Source of the DNA: Vitrella brassicaformis CCMP3155
Taxonomy: Eukaryota; Protista; Chromerida
Direction of reading: 5' to 3'
Length of the DNA stretch: 64,000 nucleotides
Assembly: GCA_001179505.1 (NCBI GenBank)
Contig: CDMY01000301.1
Span: 65,474-129,473, forward strand
Part shown: positions 7,193 to 61,126 of the stretch, in pieces
Layout: every line of letters begins with the position of its first letter
How positions within the stretch are numbered: the first letter of the stretch is position 1
Program-made: the position numbers and the translations under genes
The notes under the pieces: generated by a model
What the model saw: only the letters and a program-made list of their open reading frames with translations
Databases searched by the model: none
What the model was told of the DNA's origin: nothing

Positions 7193-7200
7193 AGCTCGCA
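7193..7200 (+). promoter_or_regulatory. AGCTCGCA motif, ~165 bp upstream of the HAD-like gene
   Basis: Exact motif instance; see finding on motif recurrence. Confidence 0.45.
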
Positions 7201-7571
7201 CAGCTTAAGGCCGCTGTGAAACGAACGATGACGGGACGACGTGAACGATCGGTGAAAGATGATGCAGGCATTCTGCGTTACTCAAGAGGACTGACAGCAA
7301 GGAGGGGCTGCGTACGAAGACCTTGACGAAGACGCTTCTGCGCATGCCTGTGGATGCAACTACCTCGTGAATGAATCTTCAATGTTCGACGCACTATGCA
7401 ATGAGCTTACAACGCGTGTCTACTGACAAACAGCCCACAAAGTCAACCACCGATCGATTTGCAGCATGGTTTATCTATCTATCTATTATCTGCTGGAGAG
7501 CACACCAAGCGCTCCTTACGTCTACGCACCCATCCATCCATCCACCGCCTCCCCGCCCTCCCGCCCGTCAG

Positions 7572-10500
7572 TCAGTGTCGGGAGAGGAAGTAGTTGACAG
7601 AGAGGCAGGCGAGGATGATGATGAGGGCAACACCCAGCAGACACACGCACCTGCAACACACCACAACCAACATTCAGGACGGCGAGGGACATTTAGCAAA
7701 GTACGCTACGCCGGAGGGGCGGGTCTTTTCTTGCCGTGCCTACGTGCGAGTGTTGCGCCTCCTCTGATGCAGGCGAGCCACACGGACCTACAAACATATG
7801 ATGGCGCACCGAATCACCCAACCGGACTGCCAGTGATTTTGTCCTGAGGACGAATCTATCTGTGGTCTGTCTGCTTACCTGTTCGAGCGCCTGGGCTGTG
7901 CGGTCACTGGCGTGCCGCATGGTGCTCTCTATGCTATCTGTGGTCACACACACAGGTAGCAAACACGAGGTAGGCAGGCCCCTTGTGGCGTCAGTGGGTT
8001 CCGTGCATCCATCAATCAGCCAAGTGGGCTGGGTTCCTACCGATGTAGTTTTGCTGCTGGCCCACATGCCAATTCAGTTCCTGATACAACTGATGAATGC
8101 CTGCAGCCAGGCAGGCAAGGCAGGCAGGCAGAGAGGCAATACGTACGGCAAGGAAGGTGTGTGAATGTGTTGAGTGAGCACGTGTGCGGCTCACTCACCC
8201 TGAATGTCGCTTTGTATTTGCTGAAGACCTTCCTGTCTGGCTCGGATGACATCCTCCTGCAGACTGTCCTCCGCCAGGGGCTGCAACCTGATGTCACACC
8301 CGCACCCACCCACATAGGATATGGCATCCACCCGACTGACTGACTGATTGTCTCTGCGGTGCGTCTGCTGTCGTGTCCTCTGCCTGTGTGGCAGCCACAC
8401 AAACCGGCTGCCTCCCTGCCTCCCTGGAGACGAACGACGAACCTGTGTTGTGCGAATGGGTGGCGGACGAGTTTGTCATCGACCTCTGAGGCGTGCAACC
8501 CATATGGATTCACGAACACTGGGTTGGGGACCCTCCAATCGCGCGCAGTCCCGTCGTTACTGTCGCCATCTACGTCAATAGACCCACATACGCACAACCG
8601 CACACCAAGACAGACAGACAGATACAAACAACAACGGACCACCACTCGTCAGTCAGCACGAGCCCTTCAGATGCCCGCAAATAAATGGTGTGTTCACCTC
8701 ACCCCCTGTGTATCGCCACGAAGAGCTATGGCAGTCACTGCTATCCTCATCTGCACCGCACCCACCCCACACATCCAAACCAACGTGGATTGATTGGCGT
8801 GTCTGCCGATCTGTGTGTGTCCGTGCCTGACCTCCTCCCTCCTTCCCTCCCTTTTTTTGTTCATTTAGTCCTTACTTGTGCTGGTTGCTGAGGGGAGGAC
8901 AGGGAGTGGCGATGATGATGAGTGAGAGATCTCCACATCGGTGTCGCAGGCCGAGGGCGAGTGGCGATAGTCACCCAACAACGGCTGCTGCACCATCACG
9001 TCCACCGTGGGGCTGCCCTTCACACGCGTATACCTACACACACACACCAATACATACGTACAGACGTACGTACATCACACAACACAACACAACACAGTAC
9101 AACGAGCTCCCTCCCTCCCTCCATGCAATGCGCACCCATCGCGTCGGGCGTGTGTGTGCATCCCTCCCTCCCTTCCTTCCTCCCGCGCCCGCTCACCTGG
9201 TTTGCTGGATGTTTGGTTTGGTGGTTTTGTCTTCGACGCTGAATGGGTTGGGAGGGGGGGTGTCGTGGCCGCCATTGCGACACGACGGGGGGGCCCGCTC
9301 CGTGGGGTCCAACAGCGTATACCTATCACAGAGGGGATACCATGCACACACCAACAAGACAGACAAGGGACAGGGCAGGGCAGGCACACCAGCCAGCCCA
9401 GCCACCCGTGTGCACACTCCATCCATTCAATGATCCCGGTCAGGGTGCAGTGCGGTGCTGTGCTGTGCAGTCGATCTCCCGCGCCGCGCCGCGCCCACCC
9501 TTCGGATTCTATGCTAGCGATGCGCTGCTGTGAGTCGCGGCGATGAATCACCTGGGTCAACGTGTACTTCTCTGCACGCCCAACCACCCACACACCCAGC
9601 CACCAATGAACGACGCATACAAACATGGGAGTTCACTCCGGCGGCATAGCTAGCGTAGGTGTGCAATGCAATCAATATCTCTCTCTCTATGTATCTTTTC
9701 ATCTGTACGTACGTACATACCCCTGATGACGTGCGTTTCTGCGATTCGCTCGAGGTCCTGACCAAACCAACACACACAGGACAGGCAGACGATAGATAGA
9801 TACCATACGATTGATTGTCCTTGGCCTCCGGGCTGGCTAGATACACACATACGTACTTACTTGCAAGGCCTTGGCGTATGTCGCCGTCAACTTCTTGTGC
9901 ACCAAACGGCGCTGCGACTGACACACAGAGGGAGGCAGCGGAAGGCACAGGCAGGGAGACCACGACAGACCACCAGTAAGTATGCCATGAATGCATTCGT
10001 GCGTTCGTTGCCTTGGTGGTTCAGTCAGTAGTGACTGGCTGGCTGACCCTTTCTGTCGGATTGTCTCCTGTGATTGCGGAAAAGCGCCTGAGGATACCCT
10101 GCGTCTCAAGCGCCAAATCCTTGGCAGTGTTCATCTTGGAATGCCTGACCGACCCGACCAACCCCATCCCATCCATCCCCCAACAGACAAGACAAGAGCA
10201 AAGATCCCCACAGAAGCCCCCCGTGGCCGCCTCTCTGCTGATCGGTCAGGTGGCTTACAGCGCTGCCTGGAACTCGGCACGTTCATGCGACTGGACGGGG
10301 CGAGCACACTGACCGACCGACACACACACACACAGACAGACGTACGTACATAAAGACCAATCATGAATGGCATTGGGCGTGGGTGGGTGTGCATGTGGAG
10401 GTAAGGAGGGAGGGGCCATGGAGGGTGCGGTGTGGCTTGCTTACCAGCTTACTGATCTCCGCTGTCTTGGCCTGCAACTGCACCCACACACACCGCCACA

Positions 10501-10666
10501 GACAGGGTTGAACACTCATCCAGCATCGGCGTGTCCGAGTGGCCTGCTTGCTGTGGCTGCCTGTATCTGCGTGTCTGACCTGTTGGATGTACTCCTGTAC
10601 GTGCCGGGCACCTTCGGCCGCTGCCTCCACATCCCGCGGGCTGTCAGGCTCAGCAACAAACGACAT
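7572..10666 (-). CDS. Syntaxin (Qa-SNARE, STX7/STX12/SYP2-like)
   Basis: N-terminal Habc-like helical exons; SNARE motif EDVIRARQEGLQQIQSDIQG|IHQLYQELNWHVGQQQNYI|DSIESTMRHASDRTAQALEQ; C-terminal TM CVCLLGVALIIILACLSVNYFLSRH*. Confidence 0.85.
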
Positions 10667-10755
10667 CGTCACAGTGGATGAATGAATCAAACTAGGATGC
10701 AACAAAAGGCCAGGCTCTGCCAACCACAAGAGTCGCTCTGGCAGATCTCCCAAAA

Positions 10756-10763
10756 AGCTCGCA
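10756..10763 (+). promoter_or_regulatory. AGCTCGCA motif in the syntaxin/Fused head-to-head spacer
   Basis: Exact motif, 47 bp before the kinase ATG (10810). Confidence 0.55.
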
Positions 10764-10809
10764 ATGATTTTCGGTGTCGCCAGCTGAAGGAGCGAGTGTG
10801 CGTTAGATC

Positions 10810-12131: not shown

Positions 12132-12420
12132 ACGGACAGCATGAGGACGTCGGTCTGTCGGGTGGGCGCTTGTAATGGTCTGGGGTGGTTCGTAGGTAGG
12201 ACGGGCGGTGGCTCTTGTGAATACATACACATCTTGATATACATGGTATCTCATGTGGGGCGGGGTTGGAATGCCCAGTCGATGCAATGTACCCAATGTA
12301 CGGATCTATGCATGTATGTATGTATCTATGTATGTGTTTATGTACGTATGTGCATGCACATCTGTGATGGATGGACGGATGGATGCCGGAGCAAGAGCCA
12401 GCCAGAAGAGAGCAGCTTAA

Positions 12421-14571
12421 TTAGCTAGGTCTATCGACGGGGGCGATGATGCCTCTTTGTGTGAAGATGGACATGAGTCGACTAAGCTTCTCTTCCGCGG
12501 CTCTCGTCAGTACAAATGCCTCCTCACTCTCCATGCCACCTGACGTGACACAGACACAGACACAGACACAGACACGTATATGAATAATGAGACACACGTC
12601 TACCCATGTGTTGTGCACTGAATGTCCGTGAGAGAGGTGACTGACCTTGCAGCGCCCAGTCAGAGATGCGTTGGGTCTGAGGGTCGACACGAATCATGTC
12701 CCAGTATGCCTGGGCGGGCCTCTCACAGGGGGCGTCGGGCCTGTCGTCGTCTCGGCCGGCCAGAATGGCACGTACTGCACCAAGTGACGCCTGTCTGCTG
12801 CACATTGCTGGCGGCGCGGCGCCCTGATCACTCGAAAAGAAAGGCCTGCACGACACGATAGATATGAACACGATCGATGGACGCACAGATTGACGCATCC
12901 GATGGCCGGACGGCGCCGGCCGACCTGTGTTCTCTCTTCCACAGATGGCTGACGACCGACTGCAGCAAATCCGTAGGATGGAAGTACATTCACTGACTAC
13001 ACTGGTGGATCGTCTATTCACCTGCCTGTCTGTATGTGCGTCCGCTCGTTCCATCCGTACGTACCTTTGTTGGGCAGTAGAAGTCCCATCCGTGCCGGAA
13101 GAGCAGAAGCGTCATGACCTACAAGAAGGTGGGCACCCCACCACGAATGCGGTGCCTGCACTGCACAAGAAGCCCCGCTTCTGCACCGCTGGCACTGACC
13201 TGTTCCTCGCCGAAGAAGATGTCCGGCAGGGGGACGTAGGGCACCTCACGCAACACGTCCGAACGACCGAACCAAAACCCTTCACAACACCAACACCACA
13301 GAGAGAGAGAGAGAGAGAATAGAGAGAGAGAGACCTCACAGCATTACCTCGCGGCATTTCCCGTGTGGTGGCTGACCTGCTGCCCAGAAGAGCGAGGGGC
13401 AAGGGGAAGGCAGATGTGAAGTCAGCATCCGACTGCAATGCGCATCAACATGCCTCACGCATGGCAAGGGAGCTGTCTCTCTGCATCAGACAGGCATCCC
13501 ACCCACCCACCCACCCTTTGGTGCGGAGCAGGCCGTTCTCATCAAAGTGCGAGGCGCACAGCAGCACGGGACGAGTCTCATCACTGACATAATCCCAGCC
13601 GACCCCATGTGGATAGGCGGGCGGGTAACTCGTCAAGATTGGCTTGGACGAGGGACACCGGCCAAGGTCCTACACACCATACACACAGATCATCCAACTA
13701 ACACCCACTCAATGAATGAATGCATCTCATCTAGCCCAGTCACTTAACCCGCCTGTGTCGTTAGTTATTGATTGATTCACTGACCCACCTCACCTCCAGC
13801 AGGAGGGTGTCCCATTTTGGACGAAACCTGAGGGAGTGAGAACCAGGACAGACCCCCACACAGTGTCTGTATGCAGACAGACGTCCTGGCGTCGTGGCTG
13901 CCTGTCTTCCTTCCTACGTGCGTACCTCATGTGGCTGTCTATCGCCAGAAGGTACGGCTCGCCCTCCCACAGGAGCTGCGCCAAGTGTCGCGCCCATGCC
14001 GGACCCCTCGCAGCCCCCTTGTCCAGCACCAGCACCTTCAGATACCCGCACTCAAAGCGGAAAAGGGGATGAGGTGCACGAGCACGTGGGCGGCAGGCTG
14101 CAGGCCCATGCTGAGGGTCATCTTGCACTGTCGATGACCCACCAGAAGCTCTGTCGTCCTGACGTCCTGGCCCAGCCGTGCGGTGGCTTGGCCTATGAGA
14201 TCCTAGCCACTTGGCCCTGAGTGCAGGATTGAAGGTAAAGGATGTGATAAGATCGTCAGCCGCAGTCTTGTCTTTGTTTCGCAAGTCGCCTGCACGCGGA
14301 CGAAGGGAGGGAGAGGCGGCATGATATGATACGAGTGAGTGCACCTTGCCAGACGCATCCAAAGGAGATCTCGCGCGGGGCATCTGCTTGGTGGATGGCA
14401 GACTGAAAGAAACGCCACACACATACACATCACACAACCAACGAGAGGGAGCATCTGTGAGAGGAGGCAGGATCTTCCCACACGATTCATGCACACCTGT
14501 ATTGTCAAGGGAAGCTCGTCGTCGCGGTAAGACGGGATGAGTACGAGGATCTTGCGCATCGCGCTCGGCAT
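12421..14571 (-). CDS. GNT1: [Skp1]-hydroxyproline N-acetylglucosaminyltransferase (Gnt1-like, GT60 family)
   Basis: ILVLIPSYRDDE, GPAWARHLAQ, LAIDSHMRF (DxH), ILTSYP, SLFWAA|GFWF, EVPY..FFGEE, HGWDFYCP. No N-terminal signal anchor, as expected for the cytosolic Skp1-modifying type. Confidence 0.8.
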
Positions 14572-14582
14572 CTTTGCTTTCG

Positions 14583-14590
14583 AGCTCGCA
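14583..14590 (+). promoter_or_regulatory. AGCTCGCA motif in the Gnt1/F-box spacer
   Basis: Exact motif within the 52-bp spacer. Confidence 0.55.
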
Positions 14591-14623
14591 TTTCAGGCGA
14601 TCGGTGGGAAAGGTGGCAGGCCC

Positions 14624-15976
14624 ATGTCGCTTGACGAGACCCCCGAGCATGTGACTCTAGAGCGCGTCTTCACCTTCTTTGAGCCCTTGGATCTGTGCGT
14701 TTTGGCAAGCGTATCCAGGGCTCTGCGCGGCCTCTCGTAAGCGTGCCCCCTCCCCCCCCAATGCGCTGCACAGCCGTACACTGCCTGTCGTGTGCCCCTT
14801 GATTTGCAGAGAGCGGGACTCTCTTTGGAGCGTCTTATGCACCTCTCTGTGGCAGGGCAAGGCCTTTGTGGCGGAGAGGTTCCGGCAGACCCCGAGCAAG
14901 GCCAGCTACCGCGGATCACTGGCCGACAAACATCGTGACACCATTACGCGTGGCGAGCTGTGCTCACTGACGTGGCACTTCCGCTTCAAGCGAGATGCGG
15001 GCGAGGAGTGGACAGATGCCGATCCGTATTGGAAGAGGGGCTCGCCCATGCAATGGAGCTTCCGGACAGACGGAAAGATGGAGCGGGCGGACGACCATCC
15101 CGAACTCAGAGCGAATGAATCGGTTCGTGGAGGGCCGGCCTGCGTCGGCCGACAGCAAAGGAGTGGGCTCGGTGCACTGCACAGCCCTCTGTCTGTCTGT
15201 GCCTGGTATATTTTGTGCAGGAGGTGCGGCGTTGGAAGTTCACGAGGGTATCATGCGGTGCTCGTGGCCCCAAAGGGCGCTTTGTCAAGGTCGGCCGTTT
15301 CCCAGGTATGTGTGTCATCCATCACACAGAAACAGACACAGACACAGACACAAACACATGGGCGCACGCAGGATCCGCCTCTACACCAGGCCAGTGGACG
15401 AGTTGTGCGTGGCTCTGTGTTTCTGTGAAAACGGTGATTCAGCGTATGTCGTGTCGCGTACCGCCAACTGGGGGTGGCTGATGGAGAGCTGCTGGGTGGT
15501 GCTCTACAGCTTCCCCATTTCCCCCTACAGCCAACTGCCAAACGAGTACCGAGACGAGGGCCTGAAGGTCGATACGGACCTCCAGTGGGCAGTAAGCACG
15601 ACGGCAGAGCACAAGCCTGCCTCAGAGGATCCGATCACACACACACTCCCCACATCCGGTCCATCTCTCGTGTTGTTCTGCAGGAGGCGTTCCTTTACAA
15701 CAATGCACTGAATGTGCCCCTGCGTTACCTCCTGCAGGACGGAGCCGACTCAGAATACGAGCCAGAGACAGGTCAGCGGGTCGGTGGGTGGGTGAAAACA
15801 GGCAGGCAGGCAGGCAGGCAGTTAGTTTTGGTTCATGAGCGAGATCCCTGCGTTGAGTGTATCCATTGGTGTGTGGTGTGTGCATGGCAGAGGGTCGATC
15901 GGCCAAGCGGCGGGGCGGGGCCAGGACAAGGGACAGCAAGCGGCGAAAGAAGAGCAGTCCGAAGGCCAATGGCTAG
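14624..15976 (+). CDS. F-box domain protein with basic C-terminal tail
   Basis: N-terminal F-box-like PEHVTLERVFTFFEPLDLCVLASVSRALRGLS|ERDSLWSVLC; multi-exon; ends AKRRGRARTRDSKRRKKSSPKANG* (NLS-like). An in-frame upstream ATG at 14537 is possible. Confidence 0.7.
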
Positions 15977-21412: not shown

Positions 21413-21420
21413 AGCTCGCA
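21413..21420 (+). promoter_or_regulatory. AGCTCGCA motif in the hypothetical/metaxin-copy spacer
   Basis: Exact motif, 36 bp before ATG 21456. Confidence 0.55.
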
Positions 21421-21455: not shown

Positions 21456-22469
21456 ATGTCATCGGCCGCCGCGGCATCGCCGGCCCTCATCATATGTCAT
21501 TTTCGTTCGATAGGTGGTCGAGAGGGCGCGTTCCCGGTGTGCCCTCTGGTGCTGGAGCTGCAGCTGCTGTGCCACGGGAGAGATGACGTCCAGTTCAAAC
21601 CAATGCCGTTCATGGAGGCTGGTGTGTGCAGTGCAGAGCCTCGCACCAGAGAGGCAGACAAGTGAATGCTGTGAGCACTGTGCCTTGAAGCTTCTGACTG
21701 TGCTGCTTGTCTGATCTGATCAGGCGGCCATGCATTGCCCTTCGGCATCAGTCGGCAGGCCGTCATCTCGGCCTCGTCACTTTACGGTCAGCCGGGGACA
21801 TTCACTCATTGTCAGACACAAACGGATGCCTGGGCCCGGCCCGGGTGTGTGTATGTGTGTGCAGAGCATGTGCAGGAGATGATGTCCGCCAGTCCGTCAG
21901 CCAAGAAGGATGGCGGCCTCGCCATCGAGGAGAGCGGTGACGTGGCCTTCTCGGTCATGGTGGACGAGATAGACCGCGTCATCCACCACCTCATATGGGC
22001 CGACGCCGACTTGTTCTCGTCCTTCACGGCCCCCCTGCTGCTCAAGTCCATCCCCTGGCCCCTCTCGTGGTGGTCGGTGGCCCACGCACGGCTGGCGGCG
22101 TCGGTGCAGGGTGGGGGAGCGGTGGTGGCCGACGAGCTGCACGACATCCTCATCGCTCTCGAGAGGCGGCTGAGGGCGCCTGTGGGGCGGCAGCTTGAGG
22201 CGAGGGTCTTCTCACGGCTGGCCATCCTGTTCTCGCTGCCTTTCCCCTCGTCGAGCCCCGTGCCGGCGGTGTTGCGGTCCAAGCACGGCCTGGTGCAGTT
22301 CTGCGACTCGGTGCTCAAGAGGCAGCCGGCCCTGTGGCCCAACAGGGCCACTTTCCTGCGGGGCGCAATGCCCCCGCGGGAGGGCAGGAAGGCCAAGGAG
22401 GGGCAAGAGGGCGGCGGTAGAACGTGCCGTCCACTATCGAAAGATACATTGTCACAGGGGATGTGTTAG
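21456..22469 (+). CDS. Metaxin-like protein, 3'-truncated paralog lacking the C-terminal TM
   Basis: Near-identical to 61127-62085 including introns. Metaxin-like segments IHHLIWADADLFSSFTAPLLLKSIPWPLSWW and LEARVFSRLAILF..LVQFCDSV. It diverges after ~22418 into an unrelated short tail. Confidence 0.7.
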
Positions 22470-29803: not shown

Positions 29804-31821
29804 CAGACAGGACGGAGGGAGGGAGGGAGCTGTACAGCGATGTGTCGCTGTGTAGCGGACGGCACGATGGATACACGCCTTCCTTGTGTTGTATCTATCG
29901 TTTGGATCGGCTGGTGTTCAGTTCATGGGGTTGGTGTGACACTGTGAATAGCTACAACCTCAACCAAGTGAGTGCGTTGATCATTCGATAGCTCATGCAC
30001 GGACAAATGGAGCATGCGACTGCCCGCCTATGCATGAGTCGCTGTGGCGGTGGCAGTGGCGTGCTCGCTCATCGGTCCTCTGCACATGGTGCAATAAATC
30101 AGTGTATCAACCAGTGACTTGATCAGGTCATGCCATCCCGGTGCAAAAAGAGTCTGCAGCAATAGCAGCAATTACACCGACGAGCATCCATCCAACTAGA
30201 GACATTCATGAAACCCTCGATCCCCCCTAGGCCTTCGTGCCGTGTCTTTTGCAGAGAGGGACGGGTGCATACCACACAACATACACACGCACAAGCATCG
30301 CCCACCCACCCCACAATACACAGACAGGTTCGCCCTCACCCACACGTGACAGACACGTGCACAAAGCCACCTACACACCCCACCTACACACGCGGCTAGA
30401 AACAGACAGACAGACAGACCAACCCACATAGTCGCATATACAATGGATGATATCGATCGAATCCATACAATGCACAGCAGGGGGACACTTCCGCTGTGCA
30501 TGACCCCACACACACGAAGAAAGTCCTTTCCCTTTCTTGTCGAATGCACACAAGCAAGAGGGCCCAAAATGTGTCTCTCTGCTTGCACGTGTTCATGGTG
30601 CGTGAGTGCGTTTACCAGGCAGGCAGGCAGGCAGGCATTCACTCAGGTCATGCATGAGTCAGCCAAGGGCGGGCATACCACGTGTGTGCACCTGGGGTGC
30701 TTTCGCCCTATGGGTCGGTGGTAGGAAGCAACCAAGCAACCAAGCAAGCAGGGAGACAACAGGAACAGACACAGACGAGGCATTCAATCAAGCCAACCAG
30801 GCCATCCATCCATCAAGTAAATTGGGAGTGTCTCTTGTTTGCGAGACCTCCTACACACACCACACACACACAAACGGGCAAACGCACAAATTCCACACGA
30901 ACAGACCGACAGACCGACCGACCGACCGACCGACAGACACATCCATCCATGGTATCAACCACTGCGATCCGTCCATCCCATTCGTCCATCCATCCATTGA
31001 TTCGGCAGCCATGAAGGGCTCAACTAAATCAACGGCTCCAAAAAACACTCTGATAGGCACTTTCTGACACAATGAACAGACAAGACACCCAGACAGACAG
31101 ACAGACAGACACCCAGATAGACAGACAGGCAGACAGGACAAACGGCAGAAAAACCACAAACCGACCCTTACAAGAGATCACGCAGCAAATTCGGGCAGCC
31201 TGTGGCTGTCCTTTCCGCCATCACAGCACCAATCACAGCGCATGACATCACATCGCCCTTGCCGCCACTTGATGTGCCTTGTGTGTAGCACATGAGTGGG
31301 GGAGGGTGGGACAAAGCAGAGTGCACCAAGTCACCAAGTGTGTAAGGGGCAATCAACCATGTATGTGCCAATCTGTCTACCAGCCTTGCAAAATGGTTGA
31401 TAAAACCGTAAGTAAAAAATTGTAAATGGCCAGCCAGCCAGCCAGCCAGCCAGCTTTTCCCCCGTTGGAACGGAACATGCACCCACCCCTCCCCACCCAC
31501 CCACCCACCCCCGCCCGGCTACAGGTACACAGCCCGTAAGGTACGCACTCGCTCGTCTTGATAAACGTACACCCGCACAGCCCTCGTCGCACCTTGCACC
31601 GTGCACACCAGCACCAATACTCATCGCGGCATCAGCGAAAAATGTGGTCGTTCACTCATTCTCGTCTGCCGACACAGACGGACAAGGGGAGGGATAGCAA
31701 AAACACCAAGTGCTCATAAGCACTCACTCATTCGTGGGGAGGGACTGCCGCCGGGGTGTACGTAGGCACATGAACATGCACATTGGAAAAAGACGAGTGA
31801 GTCATGATGTTTGCAGGGGGG

Positions 31822-32121
31822 NNNNNNNNNNNNNNNNNNNNNNNNNNNNNNNNNNNNNNNNNNNNNNNNNNNNNNNNNNNNNNNNNNNNNNNNNNNNNNN
31901 NNNNNNNNNNNNNNNNNNNNNNNNNNNNNNNNNNNNNNNNNNNNNNNNNNNNNNNNNNNNNNNNNNNNNNNNNNNNNNNNNNNNNNNNNNNNNNNNNNNN
32001 NNNNNNNNNNNNNNNNNNNNNNNNNNNNNNNNNNNNNNNNNNNNNNNNNNNNNNNNNNNNNNNNNNNNNNNNNNNNNNNNNNNNNNNNNNNNNNNNNNNN
32101 NNNNNNNNNNNNNNNNNNNNN
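31822..32121. other. Assembly gap (300 N) flanked by G-runs
   Basis: Run of N. Confidence 1.
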
Positions 32122-32231
32122 GGGGGGGGGAGGACGGGGACGGACGGGCAGAGCGAGTGAGTAGGCAGCCATGTTACATGCACACGCCCATACCTCCCTC
32201 CCTCTCCCGTCCCTCCCTGTGTGTGTGTGTG

Positions 32232-35200
32232 TCAGTAGAAGTTATTCAGTGACTCGAGCATATAGTGGACGGCCGAACAGTCACCCGTATATCCTGTTTG
32301 AACGACAGGCAGCAGACCGAAAAGGGTGTGTGCGTTGTCCTGTTCCCCATGTCAGTGTCAGTGTGTGCGAACCGTCGTACCGTTGTGCGATATGATGTTG
32401 TCAGGCCGTATGAGCACGAACGCCCCCGGGTGTTTGGGCATCGAGATACCGAGCTTGTAGTTGCGCTTGAATTCGCCCTTCAGATCCCACCTAAACACAC
32501 ACAAACCAGACCCGCATTTCCGCCAACCACGTCTGGTTTTTCCAACCACGTCTGGTTTTTCCCTCGCTCACTGACCCCATCTCGAGGTCCATAGTCGAGA
32601 AGGCGCTGCCCATGGTGTGTTCGAATTTCATCCTGACCTGCAATGTCCCCTCACATACTGTCTGCCATGTCCTTCACCCACCATCACAGGCCACTGACCT
32701 GCTTGAACACCTCCGACAGCGCCGTGCCCTCCAGCTGCGGCATGAGGGAGGGGTGTTGAGGGCACAGCAGCAGCACCGACCGGACTCCCCCTGACGGCGA
32801 TGTGGCCGAGACGGTGCCCAGCCGCTGCATCACGTTGGTCGCCGTCTTGATCAGATACAGCATCGTCTTGCTCACTATCACGGAAGGAAGATACACGGCA
32901 ATCAAGACCATGTATATGTGGCTTTCGTGTAGGGTTGAGAGCCGTACTGATGTTGTCGGGTGTGCCGGGTGCCACAGGGTCTTCGCAGGGGTCCCACGGC
33001 AGGAGGCAGCCGGTGGATGGGTCGCAGCACACGGAGCAAGTGCCGAGCATGCCCGCCGATGCGCTGTCGGGCGGTAGGGGGACGCACGCGGCCAGTATGA
33101 GTGTGTATGAGGTGCGCAGGATGATCTGGTGCAGCCGCGTCGACTTGAGGTTGTTGTTCTCATCAACCTGATCAAGGAAGGACACGTGTCTGTGTGTGTT
33201 GGCTGGGATTCTCGGCTCTTGCGCGTCCTTCCTGACCACTCCGATGATGGCATCAGGTGCCCGTTTGCCAGGCGGTATGGCGCACGAGAGCACATTGGAC
33301 TGGCCGATGAAACTCCGACCCACCAACATGCTGACCAATGCAGGCGAAAAACACAAGGACATGCAGCCGAGGATGACACGTGTATGTGTGCCTGTCTGTC
33401 TGTACATACTTGTCCTGCTGATATCTGAGTTCGGTGTTGGCCATGGCTTTGGAGAGCGCTCGAGTGACGCAGGGTGGCTTGAACAGGTGCGGCAGGATGG
33501 CCTTGAGGACCCACGTGTTCCAGGTGTTCGGCTTGGCCTCCACCAGCTCCTTGAAACCCATCGACGTATAGCGTACCATCAGCTCTACACACACATTATG
33601 ATGAAATCCCCCCCATGTGCATGTGTGTCGTTGTGTCTTTGCCCTCACCTCCGAGCGGCCTTCTCTCTTGGTCGTATGTCTCGAGCAGCGATGTGTAGGC
33701 CCCCTTGAGGACGTATGACAGCTTCCACGCGAGGTTCATGGCGTCCTGCATGCCCACATTGAGACCCTGGTAAAAGAACACACTGTACACACTGAGAACA
33801 CTTGGGTGGCCGTTATGTGTACAGTGTACACAGCCCCCAAGTCTGAGCTCGCTTCAACCACTGCACCTGGTAGCCGAGGGGCGGCCCGCAGTGGGCGGCA
33901 TCACCTGCACAGCCACAGAGAAGGGTTGGTGTCTCAAGGCGTGTCGGGAGTGGTCCTGTCGTCTGCTGTTGTGCTTACCGACGATGAAAGCGTTGCCGCA
34001 CGAGTACGCGGCAGCACATCTGGAGTGGAGTGGGTAGACGTCCCGCCAGTGCACCTCGAGCAACTCAGCACCTGGCACCACCTGCACGCACGCCACGCCA
34101 CGGCACAAACCAAGGACACACAAACCACATGATGCACCGTACCCGATGAGAATCGATCCATCCCTACCTGTGTGATCATGGCCTCCATCTCTTTGACAAC
34201 GGGTGACAGCGGGTCCCAGTCGTTGCTGAGCATCACAGCGGGGTCGACGGCCGTCTGCCTGACCATGACCACACGCCACCTGTCGCCCTTGACGTTGAGG
34301 CAGCAGATCAGCCCCCCGTTCGCCGACAGGAAGTGCCACTTAGACTGGTCGGGAGGATCGCTAGGCACACCCCTGATATATACATACAACACACACATGG
34401 ACAGACAACAAAACACGCGTCGTGATTGCAATGATGTGCTCCGCGTGGGCTGGCTGTTTGGCCGGCGGTGGGTTGGGTCACCCACCATTTGATGCGCACA
34501 TCGCTGTCAATGAATCTGTGTGGGAGAGAATAGAGATAACATGGAAGATGTAGACCTGTTGTTGCTGGCAGCCATCTGTGTGGCTTACTGGTAGGGCAGG
34601 CTGCTTCCCGGGAAGCTAATCCCCAGGTGCTGCCGCACTTTGCTCGCAGCACCGTCGCAGCCCACAAGAAAGCGCCCCTTGATGGTCACCGGCTCCCCGC
34701 TCAATTGCAGCTGAGTGTTGCTGTTGGCCAGCCCGTTGGCGCGTACATCGATGAGCTCCTCGGTGAGTGTGTACGGCTGCACCGTGACCGACGCCCCCTC
34801 GTCAGGCAGGAGGCCCGCGTTCATCTTGTGGATGTGCAAGGGACGCTTGATCTTGTCGGGACCTAAAAGACACACACAAACAGATGGACACACATATGCG
34901 TCCGCGCGTGTGTCTGTGTGTCAGTGTGTGTGGGTACCGATGATGTCCATGAGGGCCTGCTCGATTTCGTTTTCAGGCACGAGGATTGGGTATTTGAAGT
35001 GGCTGTTTTCGCACTTTGCGAAGTCCCAGTCGATGACACAGGAGCCGTCCACAAACAGCCGCTCGCCCATCACGCGCTTCGTCGACTCACTGCGCAAGAT
35101 CTCATCCATCACACCCAACTCTGATAGAGTCACCACACACGGACACACACACACACACACACTGTGTGCGTTGCACTGCCTTCCTCTCGTCTCTGCTGTT

Positions 35201-35717: not shown

Positions 35718-35725
35718 AGCTCGCA
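35718..35725 (+). promoter_or_regulatory. AGCTCGCA motif in the monooxygenase/EF-P spacer
   Basis: Exact motif, centred in an 80-bp spacer. Confidence 0.55.
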
Positions 35726-40774: not shown

Positions 40775-40782
40775 TGCGAGCT
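40775..40782 (-). promoter_or_regulatory. AGCTCGCA motif (minus strand) in the CCCH/membrane-protein spacer
   Basis: TGCGAGCT on the plus strand, 40 bp upstream of the inferred CCCH ATG. Confidence 0.55.
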
Positions 40783-45100: not shown

Positions 45101-45499
45101 TCTGACCACACAAATTGAACACGAAACCAAGTGAATGAATGGACCTGTTCTGGTTCTTTCACCTTCTCCTTCCTGCTCCTCTTCTGCGCCTTCCTCCCCG
45201 GTATCCTCCTCCACCACAGCATACCCTCCCTGCCGCACCTCGTCCAAATACGAGTCGTCCAGCGAACCAAGACGCAAAGCGGACCCGAGCAGCCCAAACG
45301 ATGGATGGCCGCCGCCGAAACCGACAAACGCACGGCCTTGCTGGAACATCTGAGGCACGGGAGGCAGGCTGGACCCGCCCTCGAAGGAAAAGGAAACCGA
45401 ACCTGCTGCTGGCGGGCACACAGCGCTCACGTTCCTCGTGAGAGGAGGAATCTGCGCAGGGGCGCGATCGGATGCATCTCGCCCATCAGGAAAGCTCAT
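42150..45499 (-). CDS. Large low-complexity/coiled-coil hypothetical protein, multi-exon
   Basis: Open exons joined by GT-AG introns; coiled-coil-like LDEAKDQIK|SLRSKLSAAI..LISEELRRVREEMK; 382-codon disordered last exon. Confidence 0.55.
45060..45152. repeat. 48-bp tandem repeat x2, intronic
   Basis: CAAATTGAACACGAAACCAAGTGAATGAATGGACCTGTTCTG at 45063 and 45111. Confidence 0.9.
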
Positions 45500-48400
45500 T
45501 TCTCAACTCAGATTTCAAGCTCGCGGCCATGATCGACCGCGCCCGGAGGCGCGAGATTAGGTAGAAGGGAACTGCCATGATGGCGGCTGCAGCAGCCGCC
45601 AGCTCGATGAAGAAGCGCAAGGCTGAGAATGGAGAGGCCATAGAATCCTCAGCTGCCTCGTGTACTGACTTACTTGCATTTAATCGGTCTTGAATTGGGA
45701 GTGTCTCTCCACCGTCATCCCGCCCAGCACACACACGCGCGCGCACGCCTCCCCTCCCCTCCCCCGCAGCTGCACGCACGCAGACACCTAGAAGGCAAAA
45801 TACCACAACAGTGTGTGAGTGGCTCTGTTGTAGGCAGGCCAAAGCCAAAAGGGTGGCCAACAAAAACACACACACGGGCGATCCGATCCATAGTATCCCC
45901 ACGCAGCACACACACACACACACGGTCGGTTGGAGAGAGAGGCGAGTGGGTGTCCGAAACAAACAAACAGGCGTGAAAAACAGACCACTATTGTGCCCCT
46001 GCCCTCCCGTGCGGCCCGCCACGGACATGTCAGCGATACGATATACGATAGATGGATATGTGTGTGACCGATGGACTCTCTCGTGCGCATGCTTCAAAAA
46101 GGGGAGGTAGTGTTGCATGCGGGACGTGACAGGCACTGCGTTGCGCGTACGTGCGTGTGCGGGTGCACGATCGCGGTCACAACATGTATAAAACGCCATA
46201 CAAACGAAGGTGCGCACACATCTCGTTCCGTGCTCGCATGGTGCCGTGTATGATGGGTGCTTTCGTGCGCATGGGGGTGGGTCAGTCAGCGAATGACTTC
46301 ATCGCTCGCGCAGAGACGCACACCACGATGGACACGCCATTCATGCTGTGTGTAGCGGCAGGCATGTATGCAGCGTAGTACACACAGATAGCAAACACGC
46401 AAGCAGACATTGCAGGCAAAGTACGAAAGGTACGGGAAGTGCACCCAATACATACGTACACCCATGCATGCATACATACATACACATACATATAGATGGA
46501 TAGATACGTAAGGACGTACGACGCACACCACTAAAGCCACACACACATGTCCGGAGGTATATACGCAGACATGCAGGCAGGCTCATAGACAGACAGACTG
46601 ACAGACAGACAAACAGGCAAACAGGCAAACACGGGAGAACCTCTGAAATTGAGGACACACTGCACCCAGGCAGGCAGGCAGGCAGGCAAGAGCCCGGTCA
46701 CACAACTACAGCCCACACGCATGCACACATTCGGGAGCACACAGGGATGTGTTTTGATGGGCACGCACACACACACGGACGAACATGCCTGTACGTACCG
46801 ACGTGAGTGAGCGAGTGGGACACACACATATAGGTGGTGCGGGGTGTGTCTATCTGGAAGGAGGGAGGGAAGGAATGCGGACGTACATCGCACGAACAGA
46901 CATACGGTTGACGCGTTCATGCGGATAGATGAATGGATGGATAATGGAGAAATAGATAGTCGATGGATAGATGGATACACACATACACACATACATACGT
47001 ACATGGTCGTCAGTCGATACGGAGGGTCGATACGGATGTAATGGGAAACGCCATGTACTGTGTACTGTCTGTCGTATAGCGAGCGGGTGCTGGTTCTACT
47101 TCCTCCAATCGGTGCACGTGTCGGGGCGTGCGAGTGAGCAAGTGGTACACCGACAAATTACGACAAATCACTAAAGTGGCAGACAGGCCAGCGGCATGCT
47201 CCCCATCCAGCAGATAGCCTGTCAGTAGAGAGTGAGTGAGTGAGTGGGTCATGCATCTTTGTATGTCATCCATCGATGGATCGAGCCAGTGATGAAAAAA
47301 TGCACCTGTGCAACTGCAAGCAGCGAGGGGGGGGTGAGTGGCAACGCAGCGACACGTGATGGTGGGTGGCACGGCTCACATTATCATGCAGCACGGCTCA
47401 GTCCACACATACACATACACATACCCACAACACATCCATGCAGGTGTGTACCCCCGCACGCACAGAGGGAGAGGGCATCCACCCGTCCGTCCATCTCAAG
47501 AAACTTCTCGCCTCGTTGATTGGACGGGCGAGCCATACCCACCCACATCCACGCACACGTGCCTACTTATGTGCGTGTGTACGCACATGTGCGTGGCTGG
47601 GTGGCTGGGCCGGACGGGACGGAACGGGTCGGATGCTGCACACCTCCTTCTCGGTACGCACGAGTGTACACAGGTGTAGTGAGGGTATGCATGGCACACA
47701 GGCAGGGCAGGTGTGTCCCACATACAAATACAGACACTCACTCACAGAGAGAGAAACACACACACGCATGCAGACGTACCTACGTCCGTACGGTAGGGAG
47801 CAAGGGAGTTAGTCAGTCAGTCAGTGAGTGTGAGTAGGCAGTTTGACCCCAATCACAGCCCCAAGCCCCCCCAGCCACCATTACCCCAACATCTAACGAG
47901 CCACGCCCATGTATGGTATGTATATGTGTGTACGTTTGAAAGCCCCATGTTCCCCGCAGCATGTCTGTAAGCAATATGATATCATATCAGGCGAGTCGAG
48001 TAGAGTAGTGAGTGCATCATAATGATCAATCACTGAATGAAGAGTGGGTGTATGTGTCCGATGGCAGAAGGCACACGTGAAGGAGCCGAGCCCTCGATCC
48101 TTCGATCGATCGCGCGGTGCAAGAAGAAAGATGAGTGCAGGTGCTCCCGTCGTGCCATCTGTCACCCGACAGACAGAACAGCAAAGTGACGCAGCGCACA
48201 ACAAAGTGCCCCCAAGGCGCCCTCAACGCCCTCTCTCTCTGTGTCCCCAACTCCCCTGCTCCCCCTCTCGGGTTCCATGTGTGTCTGGCCATTCATTCAT
48301 CCGCTCGTCAGTACGATCGTGTGTCTTTCTTCTCTCTAAACAATGGCCGCGCGAGCGATCCACACTCGTTGCAAGTCGGAACTTCTGTCTTTCTCTCCCT

Positions 48401-51400
48401 CTATCTGTGTCACGCCGCATCCATCCAGGCTTTCAGCAACAGTGCATGCAGTGCAGTCGATCGAGCGAAGTAGCGGAACGCATACATGTGTAATTGGCAG
48501 CCAGGCAGCCAGTCGGACAGACAGACAGGCAACGTCATAAACGGCTGGGTCGACGAGTGGGGATCAGACCGTCCGAAAAAACGATATTCGTCAGAAGATC
48601 ATCGAGGCATCCACTCGTTCGTTCGTCCATTCGGGAGCGGCAGGAAAAATGCAAAAAAGCATCGTCAAAAAGGAGTGGGTAGTTGCGGCTTGTATGTCTG
48701 TGTGTGTGTGCATTCGTGTCTGTGTCTATCTGCTGTCGCGTGTGTGAGTGTGCGCGCTTGAGGGCAGCTGCGAGAAGGCAAGGGTCAGCCCAGCTCAGCT
48801 TGACTTGACAAACAAGGACGACAGGCAGACTAGACCAGAGCAGGCCTGGCCTCAAGGCCAGACACGGGAAGTATTCACACACAGGAGGGAAAGGGAGAGG
48901 CAGAGAGAGAGGGAGAGGGAGATACGATCAGAGAAGAAGCCAGACTGAGGGAAAAATGGTGAGATCATCCGTCGGCTGCGTGTGTTGAGTCCTACAGCCG
49001 TTTCCAGCGTGTGTAAGGAAGAGAGTGAGAGCGAGGGAGAGAGAGGCAGAGAGTCAGTTGGCCCCCCTAGAGCACCCTAGAGATACTATACAACAGCGAG
49101 AAATGGCCAAGCGAGATTCGATAATGGACAGATGAGGCAGAGGGGGGTAAAGAGGGGGCAGCGTTCCAGCCAGCGATGGATAGAAAGAACAATACGTCCG
49201 TGCGATCGACATCCGTACACACATCCGTTGTGTTAGTTGCTGCCTACCAGCCATCTATGCGACTACACATTACGTACACGACACACCAAGAGAGACGACA
49301 GAAAGACAGACCGACAGACCGAGGAGGAGAAAAAGTGTGCTTGATAGAAAAGAACCAAAGCGTCCCTGCGTGTATAGGCGAGACGAGCGGTTGGTTGAGA
49401 ACCAGGCCGAGGGGCGAAAATCAAAACAGACCCAAACACCCACCCACACGCGACGCAGGAAGCAGAGGAGCAAACCATTCCTCTGCCTGCACCAAGTACC
49501 AATCGCTCTTCCTTTTACATAACATAACATAACAAAACAACGAAAGGAAGCCGACTCACTTCTTCTTGATTTTGACTAAGTGCGTGCTTACATATCCATC
49601 GCTCCCTCCACGGTACATAGTATATTATGCATCAGCCGTCACCACTTGTTCCGTCCTCCGCTCCTCCGCTCTTACCCACGGACGTGACGTACAAAGGTGA
49701 CTAAACCCCCCACATGCCTGGCTTGATGGATGGATGACATGCATAACAATACATCCATCCGTCCGTCCGTCCTCCCTCCAGTAAGTAAAATCCTTGAAAA
49801 GAAAGACGAAGCCTCATATGTGCGCGCGTGCGTGGCAACCGACGTAATACGTACAGTGAGTGAGCGAGCGAGCGACAATCCCTCCCGTCCATGAATGACC
49901 AAGTGACCGACCAACGACTGGCGGACTGACTATAGACGAGTTAGGTAGACACCCCGACCCCACACCCCTAGAGTGAGTGGATTGATGTACATCCATACAA
50001 TCAAGCAGGGCATGACCCACAGGCGCTCACCTCACGTATGCACAAGAGGCAACCATCCACCCACCCACCCGCCCGCCCGCCCAACCATTCAGCCAGGAAG
50101 CCAGAGCCCGTCCGTCCCCTTATCGCTACATACATCCCTGCAGTGCTTTGTGGTTGAAAAAAAAGGACCCAGCCGGGCTGGGCTGCCCTCGGTCTGTCTT
50201 TGTCTCTCTCTGTTTCTGTCCGTGGTGTGCGACGGCATGTAGGGTAGGTACAGACATACAGGGAGGCAGGCAGGCAGACAGCAGGCCATTCACACACGCA
50301 TCCAGCAGGCATCCGTAGCACCTAGTACTATACCCATGTAGCACCATCCAGCCATCCATCCATCAGCCAGTCAGCTACACAGACACACGCCCATCCATCC
50401 AATCATGCATTGACCCAATTCGCAATAAGCAGCAGGAGCAGCAATGAGTCGGTTCATGCAGCTCAGCACAGCAGGCGAGAGGCAAAACCTGACCCGCACC
50501 GTCCATCCATCTAGGAAGGCGTTATGTGCGGCGTCAGCTATCGAATTGCATTACATATGCGGCCTCTCCTCTTCGCGACGCCTGCCTGCACGCCAGCCAG
50601 ACCGACAGCCATACGGATCACACCCCATCACGTCTTCCACACACAGGTCCCTTCCCTCTTGATTCCACTGACTCGTTGCTTGATTCCAAAAGCGACAAAA
50701 GAACCGCTCAGCCCCCCTACTACACACCGGCCCACCTCACATCCATCCATGCACACTGCACACACAGCAGACAGGCAGACGATTAAATATGACATCACAC
50801 AGTGACATACACACCATTCACACCATGCACACCATGCCACATCATGCAAGCATCAGCACGTCAATCCTCCAGAGGGCTCGTGTTCCTTTTCATTCTCTGC
50901 CTCGATCCAATGAAGGCGGGGCCAGCAAAACGGCACACATTACGCCTTCCGGGCAGCTAGTCAGTCAGCTAGCCACACGAAAACACAACAAGTGCACTAC
51001 CGAGCAGCATCACCTGAGGCAGACAGCACCGAAAAGAAGAAAACGGTGAGAGCCCTCTCGGGATCGGAGGATTGAGTGCGATCAGAAGATGTCACATCAC
51101 AACAGCTAACACGACGGACAGGCCACACACGGAGACACGAGAGAGAGATGGGCAACCGTTGATAGGTATGCACAGCAATCATGTAGTTGGGTGGCATGTA
51201 CTCACGCACGCCAAGACAGAGAGAGAGAAAGAGAAGCGGAGGGACAAAAACAAAGCGAAAAATCAACATGAAGAAAGAAAGAAATAAGAAAAGAAAACGT
51301 GAGAACTGTGTGATAGTATAACTTTTCTGCAGGGCGTTGAACCGATCGCTGTCTCCCTCGGTGCCTTGCAGTCGTCACGGTGCATGCATCATTCGCAGTT

Positions 51401-53230
51401 AGCCATCTATCGGCTATTCATTTGAGCTATGTCCGTGCGGGCTCGCCTGGTGCTTGTGTCGAGCGCACGTATATAGCTATGCGATCAAAACCGGCGGGCA
51501 CCCATCAACCTAGCGTTCTGCTTCGATACGATGGAGCCCAGCCAGGCTATCTACCTATCTATCGGCTCATGTGAATTGACGAGAGAAAAAGAGGGAGGGG
51601 AAGCGGGAGGGGAGGGGGGTGTCTGTGTGTGAAAATCCCAGCGAAAGAAAGCGGGAAGAAGGAGAAGACGAACGACGAAAGGACAAAGAAGCACGAAAGC
51701 CACCCTTGTACCGAAGGGTAGGGTCTGTCTGTCTGTCTGCCTGCTGTGTCAGGTTGCCTCTCTGTTGTCTCTCTCGTGTCACCATACATTACATACCACA
51801 CACAACACGCAATACGCTCGGGCAGTCGGGAAATCGGCAGGCAGGCAGGCAAGTTGGTGGGTCGTCACTGTCGTGAGTGACCCACGAAAACAACAACAAG
51901 AGCAACATGACAACACTAGGAGGGTGGCTCGCTGACTCACAGACAGGCCTTTCCTTCGTTCCTTCCGTTGCTGGCTGTCAGGTCATCCATCCATCCATCA
52001 GGTCTCTGCTGTCCATCTGTCTCTGTCTGTCTGTCTGTGTGTCAAGTAGGCCGCCGGCACACCAGGCCACACTACGCCATGCAATGCAGTGCAATGAAAC
52101 TCACCCACGAATTCAGCCAATCACACATTGAGCATCCAACCTAGCCCACCCAGAATGAGTCCCATCCGTCCGTCCATCCATCCATCCATCCGTCAGCCAG
52201 ACAGCCAGCCATCCAGCCATCCAGCAATCCAAGAGTGAAAGTACGTATGAACGTCAAATTAGTGCCCCCCGTCGCCGGCGTGAAACGCCGACGCGAGGGC
52301 AGTCACGTCTGTCTGTCCTCTCGTCTGTCCGACGTGTCTCTCTCACTTCTTCTTCTTCTTCTTCTCTTCGTTTGTCCTTTCTCCTTTGTGTCTCCATCAC
52401 AAAGCGACTACGTTCGTCCATCCATCCATCCAGCCATTAATTGCGCACAGACAAGACCGACAGACAGATGTGGATAGACAGCACCACACACGCATACAGA
52501 AGGCATACACACACAGTAGATAAGGAAGGAGCACCTACATACACACGCACATATATAGGTAGGTAGACATCTTACGTAACGACCCGAACACTGGCAGGCA
52601 GATAGACAGACAGACAGAAAGCGGGCCCCAGCACAGACGGACAAACATACAGTGGTAGACAGCAAGCGGGGAAGACCGCACGCAACTCCGCCCCTATTGC
52701 AGACAGACCCGAATACCGACCAACCAACCAACCAGCCACACCACACCATCCATCCATCCATCCATCCACACAGCACACAGTAGTAGTCATGGACCAATAT
52801 GCATAGCCAGAGCCACCCAGCCATCCACCCACCCATTCACCCTCACATCAAGCCAGCCAAGTAAGGCATCACCCCAGAAAGTGACGAGCCGGGATCGCAT
52901 CGATCCACTCACCCATCCGTGCATGCGTCCCGATTGACAACAAGCCACTTCGTTGCCAGACGTACATACAATGTGAACGCTTTTCAGTTGCTTCGGTGGT
53001 TGGTTGGTTGACACGTATGTATGAGCCCTCTCCCCCCATCCCATGCACCCCCTCCCATCCCAACGGTCAGTCAGCCAGTAACCCAATCGTGATGCATGGG
53101 CGCCCTCCCTGCACACACATCAAGACGCATACACCACCAAGACACATACACAAGTCTGTCTGGAGGTGAGTGGAGGGCTCATCGCGTCGCTGGCTCACCA
53201 CTGTGTCGGTTCGCTGAGTCAGTCGATCAG

Positions 53231-56200: not shown

Positions 56201-56234
56201 CTGTTGTTATCTGGTGGCTGTTGCTGTCACTCAT
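53231..56234 (-). CDS. Mei2-like RNA-binding protein (C-terminal Mei2-type RRM)
   Basis: TTVMWRNIPCKYT, YDFFYLPIDFRN, NIGYAFLNF, FNGHKL..FKSNK, EVCWAHIQGLDANIDHFRNS, DHKPILF after a long disordered N-terminus. Additional 5' exons are possible. Confidence 0.9.
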
Positions 56235-57622
56235 GGTCGTCTGTCGCTGGAAAGCGGGGCGCTTGTGGCATTCACAAGGGCACGGAAGCACGGAGAAGAA
56301 GGGCACACTAGCCGATTCACGATGAGGAAGATGAAAATCGGACACTCGCAGGGACGTTTCTGCGTCAGGCCGACCGAAGAACCTGACGACACACATCCAC
56401 ACAGGGAGACGGGCGGAGAAACGAGCGAGACGGACATGCATGGTCACCATAGGCTCACGCCTCTCTCCCTCCCCACCTGCTCACCTCAGTCACTGTAAGG
56501 GCGCGAGTGCCACGTAAAGCACAAGAGGGGATGAAGGCCAGGGAAAACAGGTCTCGCAGATGGAAGGAAGGGCTGGCTCTGTCAGTTGTCCCGAGTGACC
56601 GACAGACTCAGCACGCGAAGCAAAACGCCAACAGGCCTGCCGGATGAGAGGGAACGAGCTGGCTGAAAACTTTCATCCGCTGGGATGCGCACAGTCAGAA
56701 GGGTGACGGGATGGGGGAGACGGCAGCTCGATTGCTCGACAGAGGCGGATGGCAAGCAGGCAGACTGGCGATGACGCGAATCAGTGGATCACGAGACAGA
56801 CCGGGGAGGGAGGAGAGTGCGTGGCCTGGGACGGGGACTGCAAGCAACCACGACCGACAGGCGAGGCTGTCTTGTCTGGTGGGTTGAGGTTACGCCTCCC
56901 TTGCGTTGCGTTCTAGAAGTGTAGAGGTCGGGATAACAAATCCGCCCGTAAAACACTTACTACCCTAACGATTCCGTTACCGCTCGGAGAGGTGTGATTC
57001 ATTGTTTCATTGAGCAGAAGGCCTCACACGTCCGACTCTATCTGATCCTCCCCGTTTGATTTACTTCGCTTGAGGGAGGCTGCTTGCAGCGCGCCCAGCC
57101 TCACGGGGCAGCAGAGAGATCACGAAGGACAGCACGACGTCGTGCTCCTGGAGGAGTTGACTGCCCAAAGGAATGACAAGATTCAAGTGAGAATACCGCT
57201 CCGTTGCTCGCTCTGCTTCAAAATAGCGGACAATCTCAGTTGATACACTCTTTCCCCCCTGTCTTGGTGCCGTACGAATGGACTGGTCCGTTTCTGAGTC
57301 GACTTGCAATGAGTGAGTGCACTTGACAGACCCTCTGCTCACTGCCTAAGCTCTCGCCTCTCTTGCCCGTACGATTCCAACCCCAGCACACCACCACCAA
57401 CCACGGTACACTCTCTACCTCTCTATGTACAAAACACACGTGGCGTTCACAGCTGGGCGCGCACACCGACAGAAAACTGCACAGGAGAAGTGTTGAGCTC
57501 CAAACTCTACTGTACACAGAAACTCACGTGGAACAACATGCATCAGGCATCAGGAGTGGCGTAACCACAGGAAAACTGCCACGAGAAACGGGCCCCCGTC
57601 CCTCTACACACCCGTTCATACA

Positions 57623-59861: not shown

Positions 59862-60150
59862 TGGCCGATTGGGGAAGGCAGTTAAATGTCCTAAGTGAGA
59901 GAGCGGTTTCACGGAATGTCCTAAGCGGCCTGACGGCCAAGTCCCATGTCTTTCACGCACAATCAAACGACGACACGCAACAGGAATCACCCACGCACGC
60001 TCCACATGCACAGAGGAACCCAAGGAATGTCCTAAGTGGCCTGTGAGCTTGAAGCGAGAGAGCGGTTTCACGAAATGTCCTAAGCGAGAAGATGGAAGCA
60101 GACACGACAAGGCAGGACCTGGTGCGAAAGCTGCGAGCTTCCCCGAAAAG

Positions 60151-60635
60151 CCAGCTTCCTCACTGCAGATCACAGCTTGTCGGCTGCAAATGACTCATGC
60201 ATCATCACTGCGTGTTGCTTGATCATCCCCGGCCCTCGCCCACCCAAGAAGCTGACGTTTGCCGACAAGAAGCTGGACATATGTACACAGAAGCCAGCTT
60301 CCTTGACAGATCCACCAGCTTCCTCACTGCAGATCACAGCTTTCTGGCTGCAATTGACTCACTCATCATCACTGCGTGTTGCTTGATCATCCCCGGCCCT
60401 CGCCCACCCAAGAAGCTGACGTTTGCCGACAAGAAGCTGGACATATGTACACAGAAGCCAGCTTCCTTGACAGATCCACCAGCTTCCTCACTGCAGATCA
60501 CAGCTTTTCGGCTGCAAATGACTCACTCATCATCACTGCGTGTTGCTTGATCATCCCCGGCCCTCGCCCACCCAAGAAGCTGACGTTTGCCGACAAGAAG
60601 CTGGACATACGTACACAGAAGCCAGCTTCCTTGAA
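60151..60635 (+). repeat. 164-bp tandem repeat x3
   Basis: CCAGCTTCCTCACTGCAGATCACAGC at 60151, 60315 and 60479. Confidence 0.95.
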
Positions 60636-60712
60636 CAGACTGACAGCTTCTTGGCTTGAATCACATCTTTCGCATTGCAAGACACACACAGCGCTTCAGT
60701 CGATACATGGAC

Positions 60713-60978
60713 GTCAGCTTCTTGGGTGGGCGAGGGCCGGGGATGATCAAGCAACACGCAGTGATGATGAGTGAGTCAATTGCAGGCAGAAAGCTGTGAT
60801 CTGCAGTGAGGAAGCTGGTGGATCTGTCAAGGAAGCTGGCTTCTGTGTACATATGTCCAGCTTCTTGTCGGCAAACGTCAGCTTCTTGGGTGGGCGAGGG
60901 CCGGGGATGATCAAGCAACAGTCTGCGATGATGCATGAGTCATTTGCAGCCGAAAAGCTGTGATCTGAAGTGAGGAAG
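60713..60978 (-). repeat. Inverted copies (~1.6 units) of the 164-bp repeat
   Basis: Reverse complement of the unit, e.g. GTCAGCTTCTTGGGTGGGCGAGGGCCGGGGATGATCAAGCAAC twice. Confidence 0.95.
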
Positions 60979-61126
60979 TGTTGAGGAAACGATGTGTCGG
61001 CCCGCAGATGGACAACCTCGGCTATAGCCTGATTGGTTTCTCAACAGGAAGCTGGCTGTTCGGCGAAGCTCGCAGCTTTCGCACCAGGTCCTGCCTTGTC
61101 GTGGATCTTTCCGGTCCGTGTCATCG

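Follow-up and report, generated by a model that had tools for sequence, protein, structure and literature searches.

What marks the start of a gene in Vitrella brassicaformis, a free-living alga related to malaria parasites? The question is raised by the final 64 kb of contig CDMY01000301.1 in assembly GCA_001179505.1 of strain CCMP3155, the window analysed here (window coordinate = record coordinate − 65473), in which an 8-bp word, AGCTCGCA, recurs upstream of gene starts. Transcription start in chromerids is almost uncharted, and the core promoter signals of their apicomplexan relatives are poorly defined. Most likely, the word is a signal not described before, with a part in starting the reading of genes. 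It had originally been proposed, from the letters of the window, as a lineage-specific promoter element at gene 5′ ends and in bidirectional spacers. This proposal is supported by the public gene models and by a blind ranking of 8-mers, and it is consistent with the ends of assembled RNA contigs.

The word has two forms, AGCTCGCA and TGCGAGCT, with matches on the + and − strands. Eight exact copies are present in the window, at 7193 (+), 10756 (+), 14583 (+), 21413 (+), 35718 (+), 40775 (−), 60132 (−) and 61067 (+), and there are no others; this recount returned the same eight that the original prediction had listed. Its rough expectation of two to three random matches is also borne out, as chance would give 2.56 copies by dinucleotide shuffles (2 of 100 shuffles reach 8) and 2.0 by an order-3 Markov model. 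Ranked by count alone, the word is 324th among 8-mers, a low place that arises because microsatellites dominate the window. The count-only enrichment is weak and the case therefore rests on position. The weak count also favours an explanation by chance or composition, in which the window is GC-rich, its promoters have a different composition and the word was chosen post hoc. The one-mismatch variants of AGCTCGCA speak against this, as words of similar composition are depleted and not enriched: 33 are seen, mostly in gene bodies, compared with ~60 expected.

Position can be judged against public gene calls over 2421–32469 and 43231–64000. The gene starts in the intervening 32.4–43.2 kb were inferred from open reading frames (ORFs), Pfam matches and coding potential. 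None of the eight copies lies inside a called gene or, at two sites, inside an inferred gene, in agreement with an earlier inspection by eye that had found none in coding exons or introns. The word is present in 6 of 7 head-to-head spacers versus 1 of 6 other promoter regions (one-sided Fisher test ~0.025, hand-computed).

For the blind ranking, all 22,109 8-mers were scored for enrichment in the 100, 150 or 200 nt that precede 17 ATGs. These were taken from the public annotation or an earlier gene-start call, and inferred starts were otherwise excluded. AGCTCGCA was first of the 22,109 at all three distances, scoring 5/8 at 100 nt (p = 4e-7). Its sub-words AGCTCG and AGCTCGC were in the top two for k = 6 and k = 7 under all settings, which is a further point against chance. 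A shift control was also used, in which the gene starts were moved circularly together and copies less than 300 nt apart were collapsed. Here, any 8-mer equalled AGCTCGCA in 0/3000, 8/3000 and 0/3000 shifts, again contrary to what chance would predict. The uncollapsed control is the result most favourable to chance, with 93 of 2000 shifts giving a best 8-mer of equally small p-value; this figure is inflated because one microsatellite can fill an interval and yield such a p-value. The positional enrichment of AGCTCGCA is significant in this window alone, with the choice of word allowed for, and upstream of gene starts it exceeds that of every comparable word within the window. Chance or composition is regarded as a very improbable account. 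A second word, CGATCGG, was considered as a partner and found unconvincing, having seven copies of which only three are upstream of starts.

Where, then, do the copies lie with respect to the genes? Three occupy short spacers between publicly called head-to-head genes. The copy at 10756–10763 (+) is in a 143-nt spacer between a syntaxin/SNARE gene (ATG 10666, −) and a protein kinase gene (ATG 10810, +). That at 14583–14590 (+) is in a 64-nt spacer between a Gnt1-like GlcNAc transferase gene (ATG 14559, −) and an F-box gene (ATG 14624, +), and that at 21413–21420 (+) is in a 143-nt spacer between g180 (ATG 21312, −) and metaxin-like A (ATG 21456, +). Two further copies are placed in spacers by inferred starts. 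The first, at 35718–35725 (+), would lie in a spacer of ~80 nt between a FAD/Pyr_redox gene, whose inferred ATG at 35682 (−) is followed by a GxGxxG stretch, and a plastid-type EF-P gene (ATG 35763 or 35781, +). The second, at 40775–40782 (−), would lie in a spacer of ~180 nt between a CCCH zinc-finger gene (putative ATG 40735, −) and a + strand gene (ATG 40916) that is backed by coding potential. The claim that five copies sit in tiny head-to-head spacers is upheld on this basis, for three by public calls and for two by inferred starts.

The copies at 60132–60139 (−) and 61067–61074 (+) share the 1265-nt spacer between a tryptophanase gene and metaxin-like B, where they lie in the left (60094–60160) and right (61046–61112) arms of a foldback. 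Both face outward, the former to the tryptophanase (ATG 59861, −) at 271–278 nt, matching the ~270 bp originally given, and the latter to metaxin-like B (ATG 61127, +) at 60 nt. The remaining copy, at 7193–7200 (+), is in a 544-nt gap between two tandem minus-strand genes. The view that it marks a gene 5′ end holds in so far as its distance upstream of the g282 ATG (7027, −) is 166 nt, but it is antisense to this sole annotated neighbour, and the public calls contain no + gene downstream of it. A one-mismatch copy, ATCTCGCA, at 7155–7162 (−) is sense for g282 and 30 nt from the 7193 copy, with which it forms a divergent pair. Scans of the complete window with Rfam and for tRNAs gave no matches, and thus no known RNA gene accounts for the 7193 copy.

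Six ATGs had been named as following the motif in its own orientation. Those at 10810, 14624, 21456 and 61127 are annotated starts of coding sequences (CDS), whereas 35763 is in frame with the alternative EF-P start at 35781, and 40735 had been deduced as an otherwise hidden CCCH start with a fitting intron phase. The phase does match the acceptor at 40521. The start itself depends on a proposed first exon with 5 nt of coding sequence, which is no more than plausible.

Measured from the start of AGCTCGCA, the same-orientation ATG is 54, 41, 43 and 60 nt away at annotated starts and 45 and 47 nt away at inferred ones. Orientation is informative at four sites, all of which face the nearer ATG; two sites fit both ways and the 7193 copy is antisense. 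This regularity bears on the possibility that AGCTCGCA is a proximal site where an abundant activator, or a factor that opens chromatin, binds at bidirectional promoters, working in either orientation with the start not fixed. The general regulatory factors of other eukaryotes are the model for such an opening of spacers. A factor of this kind would suit the high occupancy of head-to-head spacers (6/7), the presence of one copy per spacer though two genes are served, the antisense copy at 7193 and the copy at 60132 that is far from its ATG. Toxoplasma provides a parallel in its gCATGCa word, found ~82 nt upstream of starts and with no known factor (PMC7854901). The tight motif-to-ATG spacing of 41–60 nt at six sites, the agreement of all four informative orientations and the RNA contig ends that flank the motif within 4–19 nt argue in the opposite direction. 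An activator or opening factor is considered possible, though well short of probable.

The RNA evidence consists of spliced contigs of the region from four public runs, these being contigs and not raw reads. Splice joints confirm the kinase start, with the joined exons reading as kinase from ATG 10810. Two of the runs have a syntaxin contig with its end at 10737/10736 and a kinase contig that begins at 10767/10778. Between these divergent transcripts is an unassembled gap of 30 nt, and this holds the motif (10756–10763), 19 nt past one contig and 4 nt before the other. Contigs of the F-box gene begin at 14606 and 14615, 16–25 nt past the motif at 14583–14590. In the deeper runs, an aligned block begins at 14596 and its contig also includes parts of Gnt1, with 88 letters intervening; no conclusion was based on it.

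Could the word instead function in the RNA, either as a 5′-leader element that influences stability or translation or as the acceptor at which a leader is spliced on? The constant distance to the start codon and the sense orientation at six sites are what such a role would require, and AGCTCGCA opens with AG. Nevertheless, contigs begin past the word at two sites in two runs, the 7193 copy has no gene in its orientation, and no consensus loose end is listed at the motif. The Mei2-like gene, which lacks AGCTCGCA, adds to this. Its transcript contig, L003, starts at 56996, has an intron in the 5′ leader and agrees with the genome from the very first base, with no added leader, and a spliced-leader reading was rejected on these grounds. 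A role in RNA is deemed unlikely. The leader of the Mei2-like gene is itself unusual in length, at ~660 nt with an intron (56385–56482, 56996), compared with the leaders of ~35–70 nt implied at motif-bearing genes.

The sites also have to be independent of each other if their number is to carry weight. Their flanks are ~25% identical, which is the random level, and conservation is confined to exactly 8 nt, with only a purine preference just before them. As the flanks are at random identity, the sites are not repeat copies, except for 60132 and 61067. These two lie in the arms of one 67-nt, 91% inverted repeat, and the eight separate sites first assumed are thus reduced to seven independent ones. 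In the foldback as a whole (60094–61112), this 67-nt repeat forms the two termini and encloses blocks of a 164-nt tandem repeat that are inverted to each other. The foldback spans 1 kb between the tryptophanase and metaxin-like B genes, contains three plus two inverted copies of the 164-nt repeat, and bears at each end a copy of AGCTCGCA pointing outward. It could be supposed from 60132 and 61067, as outward-facing ends of a foldback, that the word is a footprint of mobile or foldback element ends in general. The other six sites share no flank similarity with the foldback or with each other, and such an origin is held to be highly unlikely.

The metaxin-like genes allow a comparison within the window. 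These metaxin/Tom37-like paralogues (A, 21456–22469; B, 61127–62527) are 40 kb apart and share ~99% identity across the opening ~190 nt of their coding sequences. Their upstream regions are unalignable, yet AGCTCGCA stands 43 nt (A) or 60 nt (B) before the ATG. The end of the similarity at the ATG suggests a recent duplication or gene conversion confined to the gene body.

How might the word work? On balance, it is probable that AGCTCGCA is a DNA-level promoter element near the transcription start, that the full 8-mer is read by a predicted factor, and that it is concentrated in short bidirectional promoters. Under this promoter reading, it would be an RNA polymerase II promoter element of V. 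brassicaformis situated at or within ~20 nt of the transcription start, 41–60 nt upstream of the start codon it faces, and mainly in very short head-to-head spacers. A putative sequence-specific DNA-binding protein would recognise the whole 8-mer and anchor the initiation machinery. An ApiAP2-type factor, named in the original proposal purely by way of example, would be one candidate. The sense gene would have its start just downstream of AGCTCGCA, and its divergent partner would start a few tens of nucleotides beyond the opposite side. Directly observed are the placement of the word with respect to annotated genes, its sharp 8-bp limits and the ends of the RNA contigs. We infer precisely where transcription starts, that a protein binds and that AGCTCGCA has a causal role.

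A bolder version has been postulated, in which the 8-bp word, itself non-palindromic, acts as a genuine bidirectional initiator and one predicted factor nucleates two divergent complexes, with starts ~25–30 bp apart (10737 and 10767). Bidirectional promoters typically have starts 100–200 bp apart, which is far wider than 25–30 bp. This version is offered as a tentative and rather doubtful one.

A number of points weigh against the promoter reading. All counts and positional tests come from one 64-kb window. The word is absent from the 26466/26714 head-to-head spacer and from the Mei2-like, g521, g839, g140 and g736 promoters. Only four sites inform on orientation, and the rule of spacing and orientation is not absolute because the 7193 copy is antisense and the 60132 copy is ~275 nt from its ATG. 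Contig ends cannot give true 5′ ends, and they place the start within ~20 nt of AGCTCGCA. In the deeper runs, a single contig bridges the 10756 spacer. The ATGs of the Gnt1-like Skp1 glycosyltransferase and F-box genes are 64 nt apart (14559–14624), or 52 nt with the in-frame ATG 14571, so the divergent transcripts would have to overlap or be nearly leaderless. The presence of AGCTCGCA at both metaxin-like promoters despite their unalignable upstream regions may be meaningful, but this is suggestive and anecdotal because the copy of metaxin-like B comes with the foldback arm.

Several other features of the window were recorded. An assembly gap at 31822–32121 has poly-G at both flanks and lies between the 3′ ends of convergent genes (stops 29702 and 32232). 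The closest copy of AGCTCGCA is 3.6 kb off, and the finding is therefore independent of continuity there. From the G runs that flank it (31815–32135), the gap is probably a long unreadable homopolymer. The region 45350–53230 comprises 8 kb without a called gene and has a strong A-over-T skew and lower GC, which is unusual in a compact contig. An exhaustive representative protein search with the ORF at 32687–33592 (−), which is probably a shadow frame, gave 0 matches, and it is because of this result that 32.4–43.2 kb is given as being without official gene calls. Word-based protein searches with exons of the metaxin-like, Mei2-like and Gnt1 genes each matched only the Vitrella protein itself.

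A further word, TGGCCTTT, has four copies compared with 1.2 expected, at 3217 (−), 10705 (−), 21344 (+) and 23016 (+). Three of these are 39–72 nt upstream of CDS starts, at g736, at syntaxin and in the spacer between g180 and metaxin-like A. TGGCCTTT could be another promoter word, one that is perhaps for the partner gene of the 10756 spacer.

A strict 8-bp word at gene starts would have several uses. It would improve gene models, the CCCH start being an example, it would aid the building of Vitrella expression cassettes, and it could act as bait for its binding factor. Tight divergent pairs, with ATGs 64–143 nt apart and one motif, are a natural system in which one element serves two genes. 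If the word or its factor proves common to Chromera or the apicomplexans, it would bear on the origin of the unusual transcription machinery of the parasites. If the word were indeed a bidirectional initiator, the chromerid–apicomplexan lineage would have its first defined core promoter element, perhaps one as old as the common ancestor of the two groups.

Which known promoter signals does the word resemble? Initiator-type elements include the metazoan Inr and TCT, the Inr and M3 of Trichomonas and the GAAC element of Entamoeba. They are short and oriented and are found at or near the starts of TATA-less promoters, which is where AGCTCGCA would resemble them, and some are lineage-specific with dedicated factors. 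AGCTCGCA differs from them in its unrelated sequence and in an 8-bp match that is stricter than most, and its distance to the start is known within ~20 nt. The CGCG element of vertebrate CpG-island promoters, TCTCGCGAGA, is likewise a CG-containing word of TATA-less, bidirectional promoters. It is a 10-bp palindrome, whereas AGCTCGCA is non-palindromic and appears to have an orientation preference. The related sequence used for this comparison, TCTCGCGA, has one copy in the window, inside a gene.

Closer relatives were considered through the literature. The genome paper on Vitrella and Chromera reported that closely spaced head-to-head genes are in excess and that ApiAP2 genes are numerous, and described no promoter word (PMC4501334). 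The literature search found no paper with AGCTCGCA in the context of chromerid or apicomplexan promoters, in line with the initial impression that it is not among the described apicomplexan motifs, nor was it found as an ApiAP2 word in the literature searched.

The core TGCATGCA, which is tied to promoters in Toxoplasma and Plasmodium, has eight copies in the window compared with 3.2 expected (12351, 17846, 22630, 36834, 40040, 46465, 48443 and 51381). As a promoter word here, TGCATGCA/gCATGCa gave a negative result, as none of the 8 window copies falls in the 200 nt that precede a gene start. Four of them (12351, 22630, 36834 and 40040) are 9–220 nt past stops, in the kinase/Gnt1 tail-to-tail gap and after metaxin-like A, EF-P and the CCCH ORF. 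It may be that TGCATGCA is a 3′-end signal in Vitrella.

In Toxoplasma gondii, 44% of start sites have gCATGCa ~82 nt upstream, with no factor known for it (Markus et al. 2021, PMC7854901). About a quarter of Toxoplasma genes are paired head to head (PMC7854901). The Toxoplasma word differs from AGCTCGCA in sequence, in being palindromic and in its peak at ~82 nt upstream, and Toxoplasma leaders are very long. As points of likeness, the Toxoplasma word is likewise short, occupies a large share of promoters in a related lineage and keeps a preferred distance to the start.

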